A DNA stretch of 64,000 bases. It comes from Dimorphilus gyrociliatus. Its lineage: Eukaryota; Animalia; Annelida. Within the stretch, counting starts at the first letter, position 1. Each line of letters starts with the position of its first letter. The stretch is taken from contig CAJFCJ010000006.1 of assembly GCA_904063045.1 (NCBI GenBank), positions 682,001-746,000 on the forward strand, given 5' to 3'. Under the pieces are notes generated by a model. It ran no database searches. It was not told the DNA's origin and saw only the letters and a program-made list of their open reading frames with translations. Both the position numbers and the translations under genes were made by a program. Positions 18,100-21,199 of this stretch are shown here, in pieces.

Positions 18100-18512
18100 G
18101 ATAAGTACGCTTACTGAGACGTGATTACTTGGTAACTGTTATCAGAGAGGAAGTTTTGTAAAGAATGTTAATGGAATGAAATTAAATATATTAACATTTT
18201 CAGTTTGGTGAATACAGTAAACGTTATAAGTTTATTCTTGTATACCTGATTTTCCCTACTGAATAGAAAACTGACTGGTATTAAAATTTCTGATTGCATA
18301 AGTGGAAAGGTATAGAATTTGCGCGAAATAGTAGTCTTATTGCACAACAGTTTGAAGTTTTGAATGTATGGAGTGAAGAAAATTAGTTTATCAGTTTTTA
18401 AAACAAATTGATTTCTTTGAGAAACAAAAGTGTACTTGCATTGTTCAACACCACCAAATACCCCTGTATATAGTATTACATAGGCAGCAATCAGCAAACT
18501 AAAAAGAATAAT

Positions 18513-18788
18513 TTAGGCAAGGTTGATCAGTGAATCTGCATCAACTTGACGTTGCTGTAATTCTTCCAAGTAGCGTTCGTATCTAAGGTATGGCGGAAAA
18601 TTCGCATCGACGACAGTTCTTAGCATTTCATTCCTCGTTGTTTTATCCCAACTCTTAACAACTCTGAGTCGGTGAAGGTGGTCTATTAATCCACTCGTTG
18701 TCTTTTCTTTCTTAAACCTGCGTTTCTCAATTTTAATCGGGCAAGAACTATGCTTTAAGAGCTCAAGCTTTAATCGCCAATCTGTCAT
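18513..18788 (-). CDS. Hypothetical 91-aa protein
   Basis: Intronless ORF with a good start context (gacgccATG) and protein-like composition. Paired ATTGG boxes lie about 100 nt upstream. No family recognised. Confidence 0.5.
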   Translation of the reverse strand: MTDWRLKLELLKHSSCPIKIEKRRFKKEKTTSGLIDHLHRLRVVKSWDKTTRNEMLRTVVDANFPPYLRYERYLEELQQRQVDADSLINLA

Positions 18789-19299
18789 GGCGTCTCTAAC
18801 AACCGGAAGCCAATTATACTTTCAGCCTAGAATTATTTGTCTTATAAATTATGCTTTGGATTACAGTCTCAAACTTGAAATAAGATAATTATTGGCTATT
18901 GATTGGCCGCACGCATAGATTTTATTAAATTAATAGTCTACTCCAGAACAAATAGTCTAGACCATTTAAAAAAATTTAATTACATTACGAATAAAAAGAG
19001 AAATTGAAGGGCTCTTTTCTTCAAATGACTATCTGCAACTAGTATCCAATCAAAAAAAAATTTGGTAAAGAAATTCATCTTTTCAAATTAGAACTTATGA
19101 AACATTTGTAATAGGGTAAATTGACAGAAAACTCTCAATTAATTGCGGTTACGTGATGACGCCAATAAGTCCATAAAATCGTTCGTATTCGACGTTTTTT
19201 TATTAAAACATCAATGAACAGCCGGATTCGATCGCTGATTCGGAAATTGATTTAAACGCCCGATCAGTACTTTATACACTTATTCAAAAACTAGACGGC

Positions 19300-19923
19300 A
19301 TGGGGATATGTTCGAGTGTTGAAAAATCTTTTATTGTTTCTAATATATCGAAGAATATTGTTGTTATTTTTTCCAGTACAAAGAGTCAACATTCTAAGAT
19401 AGCCAAGAAGGTTATCGTTATTAATCAGAATTTCATTGAAAAGATCTATATAATTGTTTGAGAATTTAAAATTTCAAGATTTTACTTTACAAATGAATAT
19501 CATAAAACATACTGTAGGTGAAATGAGTGCTAATATTTTAAAATTTCAGATACTTAAGCAAGTTGGAGCTAAATATAAGCAGATTGAGTTGAATGAAATG
19601 GAAAATGGATTAAAAATATTGGAAAAACTAGGCGAAATGACCGATCACGCTACTCTTCCGAGAGTCTTTATTAAAGGAAAATGTATAGGCGGTAAGTAAA
19701 TGTGGCAATTTATAGATTTGAATAAGACTGTAAAAATATTTCAGGGGCTCAAGAACTAGCTGATTTACACAAGAGCGGTGAACTGAAGGTAATGCTTAAA
19801 AATCTAAATGCAATATGGTCAGAAAATGAAAAAGAATCAGGCCAAAAAATTGACGAGATTGAAGAAGATCAAAATGAAAACGAGGAAGAAGTCCGAAGAG
19901 ATTCAACTATTAGCACAAACTAA
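19300..19923 (+). CDS. Glutaredoxin-fold protein lacking both active-site cysteines (pseudo-glutaredoxin), N-terminal MGICSS
   Basis: Three exons: 19300-19410, 19550 to about 19691, about 19745-19923. Product ISKNIVVIFSSTKSQHSKIAKKIL...TLPRVFIKGKCIGGAQELADLHKSGELKVML aligns to the Grx2 pattern with SQHS in place of CxYC. Confidence 0.8.
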
Positions 19924-20030
19924 ACAAGTAATTTAATTTTTTAAGTTTTCATTTCAAGCAAACTTGACCTATGATGTCTAAAATGGAATATTCACAACGT
20001 CACGTTTAAAAAATTGATACTGATACTTAT

Positions 20031-21199
20031 TTATGAAGATTTTCCAAAAAGTTTCCCACCACTTCTTATTCTGCAAAATAAAGTCTGAGTCTTGTGCCAT
20101 TCTTTGTTTACAGTTTTACGTACTTAGATTTGCTAGCCTTTTTTGCGGGTTTTTCACTTGCGGAAGCACTATCTGTAATCATTTGCTCTGCTTCCGCGCT
20201 CTCAACCTGCTGAGTTGCTTTAAGAGTCTGCTTGATGCTTGATATCTGAATGGATCGCAGGAACATCAGTAAAGTAATAATCAACGGAATATATTTGACT
20301 CACTTCCTGGTCTACTTTGGCTTGAATCTCCGATTGTTTAGCTTTTCTCGTATTGGCCTTGCGAATTTGTTTTTCGATATTTGTTTGCATATTTTCACAG
20401 TTCGCACACCTTATAAATAAAATAATTAAATACTAATTCAATGAGGACGAAAGAGCACAACCAAATTTCCAATGTTTGAATTATGTCCTTTACCGCAGCC
20501 GGAGTAACATCGCGCCCAATAGAATAATCAACTTCAAGCCTTTGATTTCGTTGATCCAATTTACCCTCAATGACGTTTGCATAAATTATCTCAATAATTA
20601 AATCCTTAAATATAACAAACTTTTGACAAGATTTTTTTTAAGAATTTGACTACAAACCTCTAGTTCTCGGGTGTTTTTCATATCTAATTCTTCCAATAAA
20701 GTCGAATATGGTATTCTCTATATGAAAATAAAAACTCTTTCTAATTATGCTATTGAAAAAGATATGAAAATTTACCTTGTCAATTAGCGATAAAGATACG
20801 ACTGTTAATGCTTTTAGCTTTCTTAACATAGTATCAGTTAACTCGGGTAGTTGATCTATGTTTTCTATTTAAAAAATATGTCATTAGAAACGTGTTTCTT
20901 AGTTTTATCATAGTTACTTCTATATTCTTTGTAAGTTCCATAAGCAAAGAGATTTAACGCATTTAGATATTTCGAATATTCGCCTTCTGATAACTGTATA
21001 TTATTTATAGTAAGTTATTAGTACACTTTGTATATCCTCATACTTCACAAATGTTAGGCATATCCAATAATTCACCAAAAACATAAACGTTTGGTGCTTC
21101 AAGGACTTGGTTGATCAATTCAGCCATAGCTGCCCCCTTTGCAGTCTTAGCAAGCAAAACATATTGCTCCAGAGGATTTGAAACAGTTTTCTCGGACAT
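20031..21199 (-). CDS. COPS7: COP9 signalosome subunit 7
   Basis: [24 protein letters not shown]...[56 protein letters not shown] (PCI domain). Confidence 0.95.

Follow-up and report, generated by a model that had tools for sequence, protein, structure and literature searches.

To our knowledge, the redox-dead members of the thioredoxin and glutaredoxin (Trx/Grx) families that have been recognised are mostly either ancient, with an origin that can no longer be traced, or have kept one cysteine together with the binding of glutathione. The best point of reference for the gene described here is animal GLRX2 (for instance zebrafish Grx2, structure 3UIW, and the Owenia fusiformis protein named 'Glutaredoxin-2, mitochondrial'), which has the PF00462 fold, oxidoreductase activity and the ability to bind an Fe-S cluster through the first active-site cysteine. 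Its typical features are: a C(S/P)(Y/F)C active site with a Lys at position -3, a Gln in helix 3, the G-x-R-TVP loop, a Cys in the GKCIGG segment and an MGxxx[S/T] start located some 30-37 residues before the active site. A comparable MGxxxS start is found in the class I glutaredoxin GRXC1 of Arabidopsis, a fully active CGYC enzyme that attaches to membranes in a myristoylation-dependent manner and is delocalised by a G2A replacement (bioRxiv 10.1101/2023.09.01.555924); it has no Cys near the N-terminus, which excludes palmitoylation. Grx folds that lack an oxidoreduction function are represented by the plant class III ROXY/CEPD proteins and by the class II CGFS glutaredoxins, whose inactivity has been explained by an altered geometry of the glutathione site (PMC11724882, PMC11887855, PMC7138851), and which have not lost the first active-site Cys and still bind glutathione or Fe-S clusters. 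The SH3BGR/SH3BGRL proteins, finally, have a Trx-type fold without a redox motif, which in SH3BGR is extended by an acidic (glutamate-rich) C-terminus, and act by non-enzymatic binding: SH3BGRL caps the pointed ends of actin (PMC12827327). These proteins are ancient, widespread and not lipid-anchored.

We analysed a stretch of 64,000 nt from the annelid Dimorphilus gyrociliatus (referred to as the window; all coordinates are relative to its first letter), which carries a Grx-like gene at 19300-19923 on the forward strand. In the reading that we prefer, and to which we assign a probability of roughly 0.55, the gene encodes a Grx2-derived pseudoenzyme: a binding module that is tethered by lipid, does not catalyse a reaction and is regulated through an RRDS motif. 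Such a protein has so far been seen only in Dimorphilus and its close relatives. The transition appears recent and can still be read: the protein nests inside Grx2, its nearest canonical relative has a CPHC active site and the core of the fold was left untouched. The gene would therefore provide a clean natural test of what the Grx scaffold can do without thiol chemistry, and a membrane-tethered, phospho-regulated binding module is a concrete hypothesis for a tractable annelid with a very compact genome.

The gene consists of three exons separated by GT..AG introns, and the spliced coding sequence of 432 nt specifies a protein of 143 aa. Exon 1 (19300-19410; 37 codons, with the GT donor at 19411) encodes the N-terminal sequence MGICSS, helix alpha0, strand beta1 (VVIF) and a degenerate active site, in which S29, Q30, H31 and S32 (SQHS; agt caa cat tct, 19384-19395) take the position of the CxxC motif. 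It is followed by intron 1 (19411-19549) and by exon 2 (19550-19691), which contains the core of the Grx domain, including L61, D69-H70-A71, T72-L73-P74 (the TLP motif, 19652-19660), C82 and G84. The latter is the first residue of the GG pair (residues 84-85), the codon of G85 being split by intron 2 (19692-19744; phase 1). Exon 3 (19745-19923) encodes the final Grx-fold helix (up to around residue 108), an acidic linker and the C-terminal motif EVRRDSTISTN (19888-19920), with an RRxS consensus for basophilic kinases, and ends with the stop codon (19921-19923). The protein contains only two cysteines, C4 and C82. Past residue 90 there are 15 acidic versus 7 basic residues, and RRDS corresponds to residues 133-136. 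The features that had been listed in the initial annotation of this DNA (MGICSS, SQHS, TLP, GG, the acidic tail and RRDS) were thus all recovered at their coordinates upon translation. Its description of the gene as an intact ORF holds in so far as the gene is intact, spliced and transcribed, but the coding sequence is divided over three exons and not contained in a single continuous frame.

The exon structure was evaluated using assembled transcript contigs from four public runs that were placed on 18400-20400: X1 and X2 from organism A and X3 from organism B, both relatives with around 90-95% identity to the window, and X4 from the same species (100% identity). The spliced contigs of X1/X2 and X3 join 19410 to 19550 (GT..AG) and 19691 to 19745, so that both introns are skipped. 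The X4 contigs stop exactly at 19410 and resume at 19548, and no single X4 contig spans the junction of exons 1 and 2. Over 19145-19414, and thus through the ATG, the X1/X2 contig and the genome are colinear, which implies that there is no intron, no alternative coding exon and no upstream CxxC-bearing exon in between. Moreover, exon 2 alone aligns to positions 18-60 of the Pfam profile, so the active-site segment must come from exon 1. A different first exon that would supply the CxxC motif, which had been put forward as the observation that could overturn the initial annotation, was accordingly not found. Among the differences listed for the four runs, none falls within 19384-19395, and those listed for exons 1 and 2 (19359, 19377 and 19588) are all synonymous third-position changes. 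RNA editing back to Cys was considered and rejected, as an X4 contig runs over 18942-19410 without a differing letter, with the proviso that assembled contigs drop rare variants. In organism A, the spliced sequence is longer by 9 bases (the three codons V-T-A) exactly at the exon 1/exon 2 junction, pointing either to a donor that has shifted or to an insertion in helix alpha1 of this relative; the junction in organism B is the same as in the window.

The public protein model for this gene, DgyrCDS4318 (P0001; 125 aa), is identical to exons 2 and 3 but omits exon 1 and starts at an ATG within intron 1 (19493). It consequently lacks MGICSS and the SQHS site as well as strand beta1 and helix alpha1, and with exon 1 both features of interest are lost from the public record. 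The annotated start is an artefact: stop codons close the reading frame upstream of exon 2 in the orthologous gene described below, the 19 residues encoded by the intron are not conserved, and the transcripts splice exon 1 to exon 2.

We then established the family relations of the protein. Pfam PF00462 (Glutaredoxin) was the sole match above the cut-off, with exon 2 alone scoring 28 bits (cut-off 22.9; E 2.5e-6) and residues 20-125 of the public model 26.5 bits. The best NCBIfam model was GRX_euk (E 4.3e-14) and the best match among solved structures was zebrafish Grx2 (3UIW; E 2.6e-13). An exhaustive HMMER search of 1.84 billion representative sequences yielded 558 hits at E ≤ 1e-3, the best single-domain relatives being 45-51% identical, and no cluster of close orthologs was present among them. 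The closest named relatives were animal GLRX2 proteins from teleosts, sharks, the annelid Owenia, the leech Helobdella, a bivalve and a rotifer; identity to animal Grx2 over the domain is around 45-50%. In a maximum likelihood tree of the domain, the protein was placed within the animal Grx2 clade (support 89/94), which comprised 30 rows and included fish, shark, Owenia, Helobdella and bivalve sequences, so that both the profile match and the phylogenetic position identify a class I, Grx2-type glutaredoxin. The sister sequence (P0068, from SRR18067527; support 86/82) carries CPHC. The stem leading to the Dimorphilus protein measures 0.82 substitutions per site versus a median of 0.41 for the tips, and the two tips that follow the split between the two species measure 0 and 0.009. 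From CPHC the present motif could have arisen through three single-base changes (tgt cca cat tgt to agt caa cat tct).

Word-index protein searches, performed with the 81-aa frame that holds exon 2 and with residues 20-125 of the public model, returned only the annotated protein itself, which indicates that the searched database holds neither a full-length or transcript-derived version nor a close ortholog of suitable length. When P0068, the nearest canonical relative, was used as the query, only distant Grx proteins of beetles and echinoderms were recovered. Membership of the SH3BGR family was ruled out by Pfam, as the corresponding profile (PF04908) gave no match even at E values up to 1. The likeness to SH3BGR proteins is thus functional and architectural only and crosses families, the Dimorphilus protein being a recent, bona fide Grx2 derivative. 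The top HMMER hits (P0002-P0034) were long proteins of up to 1034 aa with 2-4 tandem Grx repeats, some of which have degenerate active sites (e.g. SPYS, DPYS and GNRF). A Grx2-like protein of the bryozoan Watersipora subatra (P0113; XP_067928954.1) also seems to be devoid of both active-site cysteines, as it reads S-L-S-Y-G-R-IAKK against S-C-S-Y-C-x-x-AKK in its relatives. The helix-3 Gln, G-A-R-TVP and GG are present in this protein, strand beta1 is missing, and it could represent either an independent Cys-less Grx2 derivative or a problem in the gene model.

A full ortholog was found in the genomic contigs (L001-L004; SRR23372228-32) of a more distant relative, which were reached through a 55-aa ORF for the tail (P0071). 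The contig L001 contains the genes for DLD, the Grx-like protein, CSN7 and an EF-hand protein in the same order as in the window, in a block with 72-76% identity at the DNA level, and the orthologous Grx-like gene has the same three-exon structure and also encodes 143 aa. Residues 1-100 are identical between the two proteins, MGICSS and SQHS included, as are 100 of the first 101. Over codons 1-101, we counted 38 synonymous codon differences and a single amino-acid change (M101L), which corresponds to a dS of 1.39, a dN of 0.0125 and a dN/dS of ~0.01 according to the method of Nei and Gojobori (NG86). The differences in exon 1 are 12 synonymous and 0 nonsynonymous, the codon of S32 itself having changed synonymously from tct to tca, and the protein encoded by exon 2 is the same despite 19 synonymous codon changes. 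The introns are 58% (intron 1) and 63% (intron 2) identical, and the neighbouring proteins 83-91% (DLD), 84-94% (CSN7) and 86-91% (EF-hand protein). The Cys-less domain is the most constrained coding sequence of the syntenic block. The gene passed through a burst of changes and then became the most constrained of its neighbourhood. The retention of 100 out of 101 residues at a dS of around 1.4 excludes neutral decay in the SxxS ortholog, the other outcome that would have gone against the initial annotation; what we observed instead was very strong purifying selection over codons 1-101.

To put the active site in perspective, we collected the tetrapeptides found at that position in 176 Grx-domain alignments derived from the 150 best database relatives. 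The most common were CPYC (57), CPFC (23), CPHC (16) and CPYS (13), and a Ser at both the first and the fourth position occurred in only two, both of them internal repeats of multi-repeat proteins. The initial annotation was correct in that both catalytic cysteines have been replaced by Ser, SQHS standing against CP[Y/F/H]C in the relatives, and judged by these alignments the presence of SQHS is more than chance. The spliced protein was also aligned with 51 single-domain relatives and the columns that were conserved in 80% or more of these were inspected. Seventeen of the 24 conserved columns are retained, comprising T72, P74, G84-G85 and the core of the fold, and seven are changed: S26 (family Lys at -3, 94%), S29 (Cys, 98%), Q30 (Pro, 80%), S32 (Cys, 88%), L61 (helix-3 Gln, 90%), D69 (Gly, 86%) and L73 (the invariant Val of TVP, 100%). 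Two further departures are A71, which replaces an Arg (67%) in the basic loop, and H31 in place of Tyr or Phe. The remaining cysteine of the domain, C82, is ancestral (Cys in 53% of the relatives) and the acidic residue after GG, E88, is kept.

All seven changed columns fall in the areas that were defined experimentally as active site and glutathione site in ScGrx7, where mutagenesis identified the sites that act as glutathione scaffold or activator: the Lys three positions before the Cys, the Pro and Tyr of CPYC, the helix-3 Gln and the basic loop before TVP (PMC7138851). H70 and A71 take the positions of R152 and R153, which line the groove in ScGrx7 (PMC7138851). Besides the two cysteines, six further determinants (Lys, Pro, Gln, Gly, Arg and Val) have thus been replaced, and three of the replacements make the groove, whose ligand is anionic, less positive or more negative. 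The view that the glutathione site is retained stands for the cis-Pro P74 and for GG, but these are elements of the fold, and of the glutathione-related residues only T72, P74, G84-G85 and E88 are kept. By alignment to characterised glutaredoxins, the whole groove for glutathione has been rebuilt with loss of positive charge, a change that goes well beyond the two Cys-to-Ser replacements. The motif SQHS lacks the nucleophilic first Cys of the CxxC or CxxS type and a glutathione-dependent oxidoreductase activity is expected to be absent. In terms of its sequence, the protein is a Grx by descent and fold and not by enzymology.

These differences set the protein apart from the described systems. 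Animal Grx2 has the residues C(S/P)(Y/F)C, Lys at -3, helix-3 Gln and G-x-R-TVP that are replaced in the Dimorphilus protein, and since the active-site cysteines are among them, thiol catalysis and Cys-ligated Fe-S binding of the Grx2 type should be impossible. The ROXY/CEPD and CGFS proteins keep at least one of the active-site cysteines, whereas the Dimorphilus protein has lost both, and most of the contacts to glutathione as well. By analogy, its closest functional counterparts may be the SH3BGRL proteins and, in plants, the redox-inactive ROXY family.

The second property that we inspected was the N-terminus. The sequence MGICSSV fits the PROSITE-type pattern G-{EDRKHPFYW}-x(2)-[STAGCN]-{P} and has Cys4 nearby, and MGICSS is identical in the ortholog. 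A myristoylation-type start located 31-39 residues before the catalytic Cys was found in 14 of the 51 relatives and in 10 of the 28 members of the Grx2 clade, where shuffled sequences led us to expect around one, with a maximum of 5. In these relatives, the MGxxx[S/T] start is placed at residue 1 or directly behind a presequence of the mitochondrial type. Given this positional enrichment over shuffling, the lipidation-type start looks ancestral to the Grx2 clade and would not be an innovation of this protein. The reading of MGICSS as an N-myristoylation-type start, proposed beforehand, has thereby gained in weight: it fits the pattern, is the same in the ortholog and matches a conserved element of the clade. 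Motif prediction is weak on its own and we consider the myristoylation of Gly2, the palmitoylation of Cys4 and a location at the membrane as predicted properties. The literature searched did not yield a report on lipidation of animal Grx2. Compared with Grx2, the Dimorphilus protein has no mitochondrial presequence, a shorter N-terminal linker (28 residues from M1 to S29) and an added acidic tail with the conserved RRDS. Compared with GRXC1, it combines a similar start with a Cys-less active site and with Cys4, and the lipidation motifs of plants and animals probably arose independently.

The tail shows a different pattern of conservation. Its dN is 0.41 (residues 102-132), versus 0.0125 for codons 1-101, and the ~30 residues that precede the C-terminal motif have diverged from those of the ortholog. 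The last 11 residues, EVRRDS[T/A]ISTN, are again identical at 10 of the 11 positions (T137A), with five more codons that differ synonymously only. The RRDS motif at the end of the acidic tail, flagged earlier as a potential PKA site, is hence conserved within a tail that has otherwise diverged, and phosphorylation of RRDS may be a means of regulation.

Taken as a sequence of events, the preferred reading would be as follows: a class I glutaredoxin of the Grx2 type kept its fold and lost its thiol chemistry (CxxC to SQHS), its glutathione groove was rebuilt, and the new surface was then frozen under very strong purifying selection. The protein would be N-myristoylated at Gly2 and probably palmitoylated at Cys4, which would keep the Grx fold near the cytosolic face of a membrane. 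There, the remodelled groove of the former active site could bind, but not convert, a protein or some other ligand as its partner, which would make the protein an adaptor or regulator, and the terminal RRDS-containing motif of the flexible acidic tail would be a site of phosphorylation or docking. Precedents for Trx/Grx folds that have become non-enzymatic binding modules are provided by SH3BGRL on actin (PMC12827327) and by ROXY9 (PMC11724882). A more far-reaching version, which we propose only tentatively, holds that the protein is an essential, dually lipid-anchored, non-redox signalling adaptor, in which the groove has become a new invariant binding site or a catalytic site of the Ser/His/Asp type and the output is gated by phosphorylation of RRDS. 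If true, it would represent a recent and traceable case, within one small animal lineage, in which the Grx fold was neofunctionalised from enzyme to adaptor.

The function that was suggested at the outset has fared less well. In that view, the protein is tethered to a membrane and, without catalysis, reads glutathione or glutathionylated proteins through the ancestral glutathione site. The strong selection is compatible with such a role, as are T72, the cis-Pro loop with P74, G84-G85 and E88, and laboratory-made Cys-to-Ser mutants of Grx are in general still folded. The retained residues, including the acidic residue after GG, may even allow some residual, weak binding of glutathione. However, a simple reader or trap would have needed a change in the two cysteines only, whereas the net charge of the groove has shifted by about -3 against an anionic ligand and precisely those residues with the largest measured contribution as scaffold or activator are gone, the change of Tyr to His included (PMC7138851). 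Because these determinants have been replaced, the reader function is not supported and binding of glutathione as the conserved function is unlikely.

Even less probable, in our opinion, is that the replaced residues constitute a neo-functional centre, either a catalytic Ser/His/Asp site or a His/His/Asp(/Cys) metal site, composed of S29, H31, S32, D69-H70 and C82. A Ser at the N-terminus of a helix is a classic position for a nucleophile, and S29, H31 and S32 would lie at the N-terminus of helix alpha1, with D69-H70 in the loop before the cis-Pro. These residues count as new when compared with the family consensus, the ortholog has every one of them, and H70 and A71 are found at the groove-lining Arg positions of ScGrx7. 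Yet a His at the third position of the motif is also present in ordinary CPHC relatives (16 of 176) and C82 was inherited, being a Cys in half of the relatives; the literature searches did not turn up a precedent. Finally, the idea that we are dealing with a decaying or recently inactivated Grx2 copy, or with an artefact that hides a real CxxC first exon, to which the different start of the public model and the long stem branch might seem to point, is refuted by the dN/dS of ~0.01 with a fully synonymous exon 1, by the transcript contigs of two related organisms that splice exon 1 to exon 2 behind a colinear 5' UTR, and by the stops at the non-conserved intron-1 start in the ortholog.

The DNA around the gene displayed several additional features. 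Identity to the orthologous locus is 83% over the 200 nt that precede the ATG, versus 58-63% for the introns. The promoter or 5' UTR block (19120-19299, +), in which the transcript contig of a relative begins at or before 19145, contains ttacgtgatgacgccaat, a bZIP/CRE-like TGACG plus a CCAAT, and two short upstream ATGs (19156 and 19214), for which the DNA is conserved and the peptides are not. Further upstream, between the DLD gene and the Grx-like gene, a 91-aa ORF is present on the minus strand (18513-18788). This ORF lies under a deep X4 contig (18400-18746), is only weakly conserved in the more distant relative (~58% in tblastx), and may be a short lineage-specific gene or part of a UTR. 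On the downstream side, within 19548-20400, the Grx-like gene converges with a CSN7-like gene on the minus strand (introns 20071-20123 and 20246-20303). An X4 contig that is spliced for the minus-strand introns runs unspliced across exons 2 and 3 and intron 2 of the Grx-like gene, and the 3' end of the CSN7-like gene may therefore overlap the Grx-like gene in antisense. The two genes were also merged in a single contig in X3.
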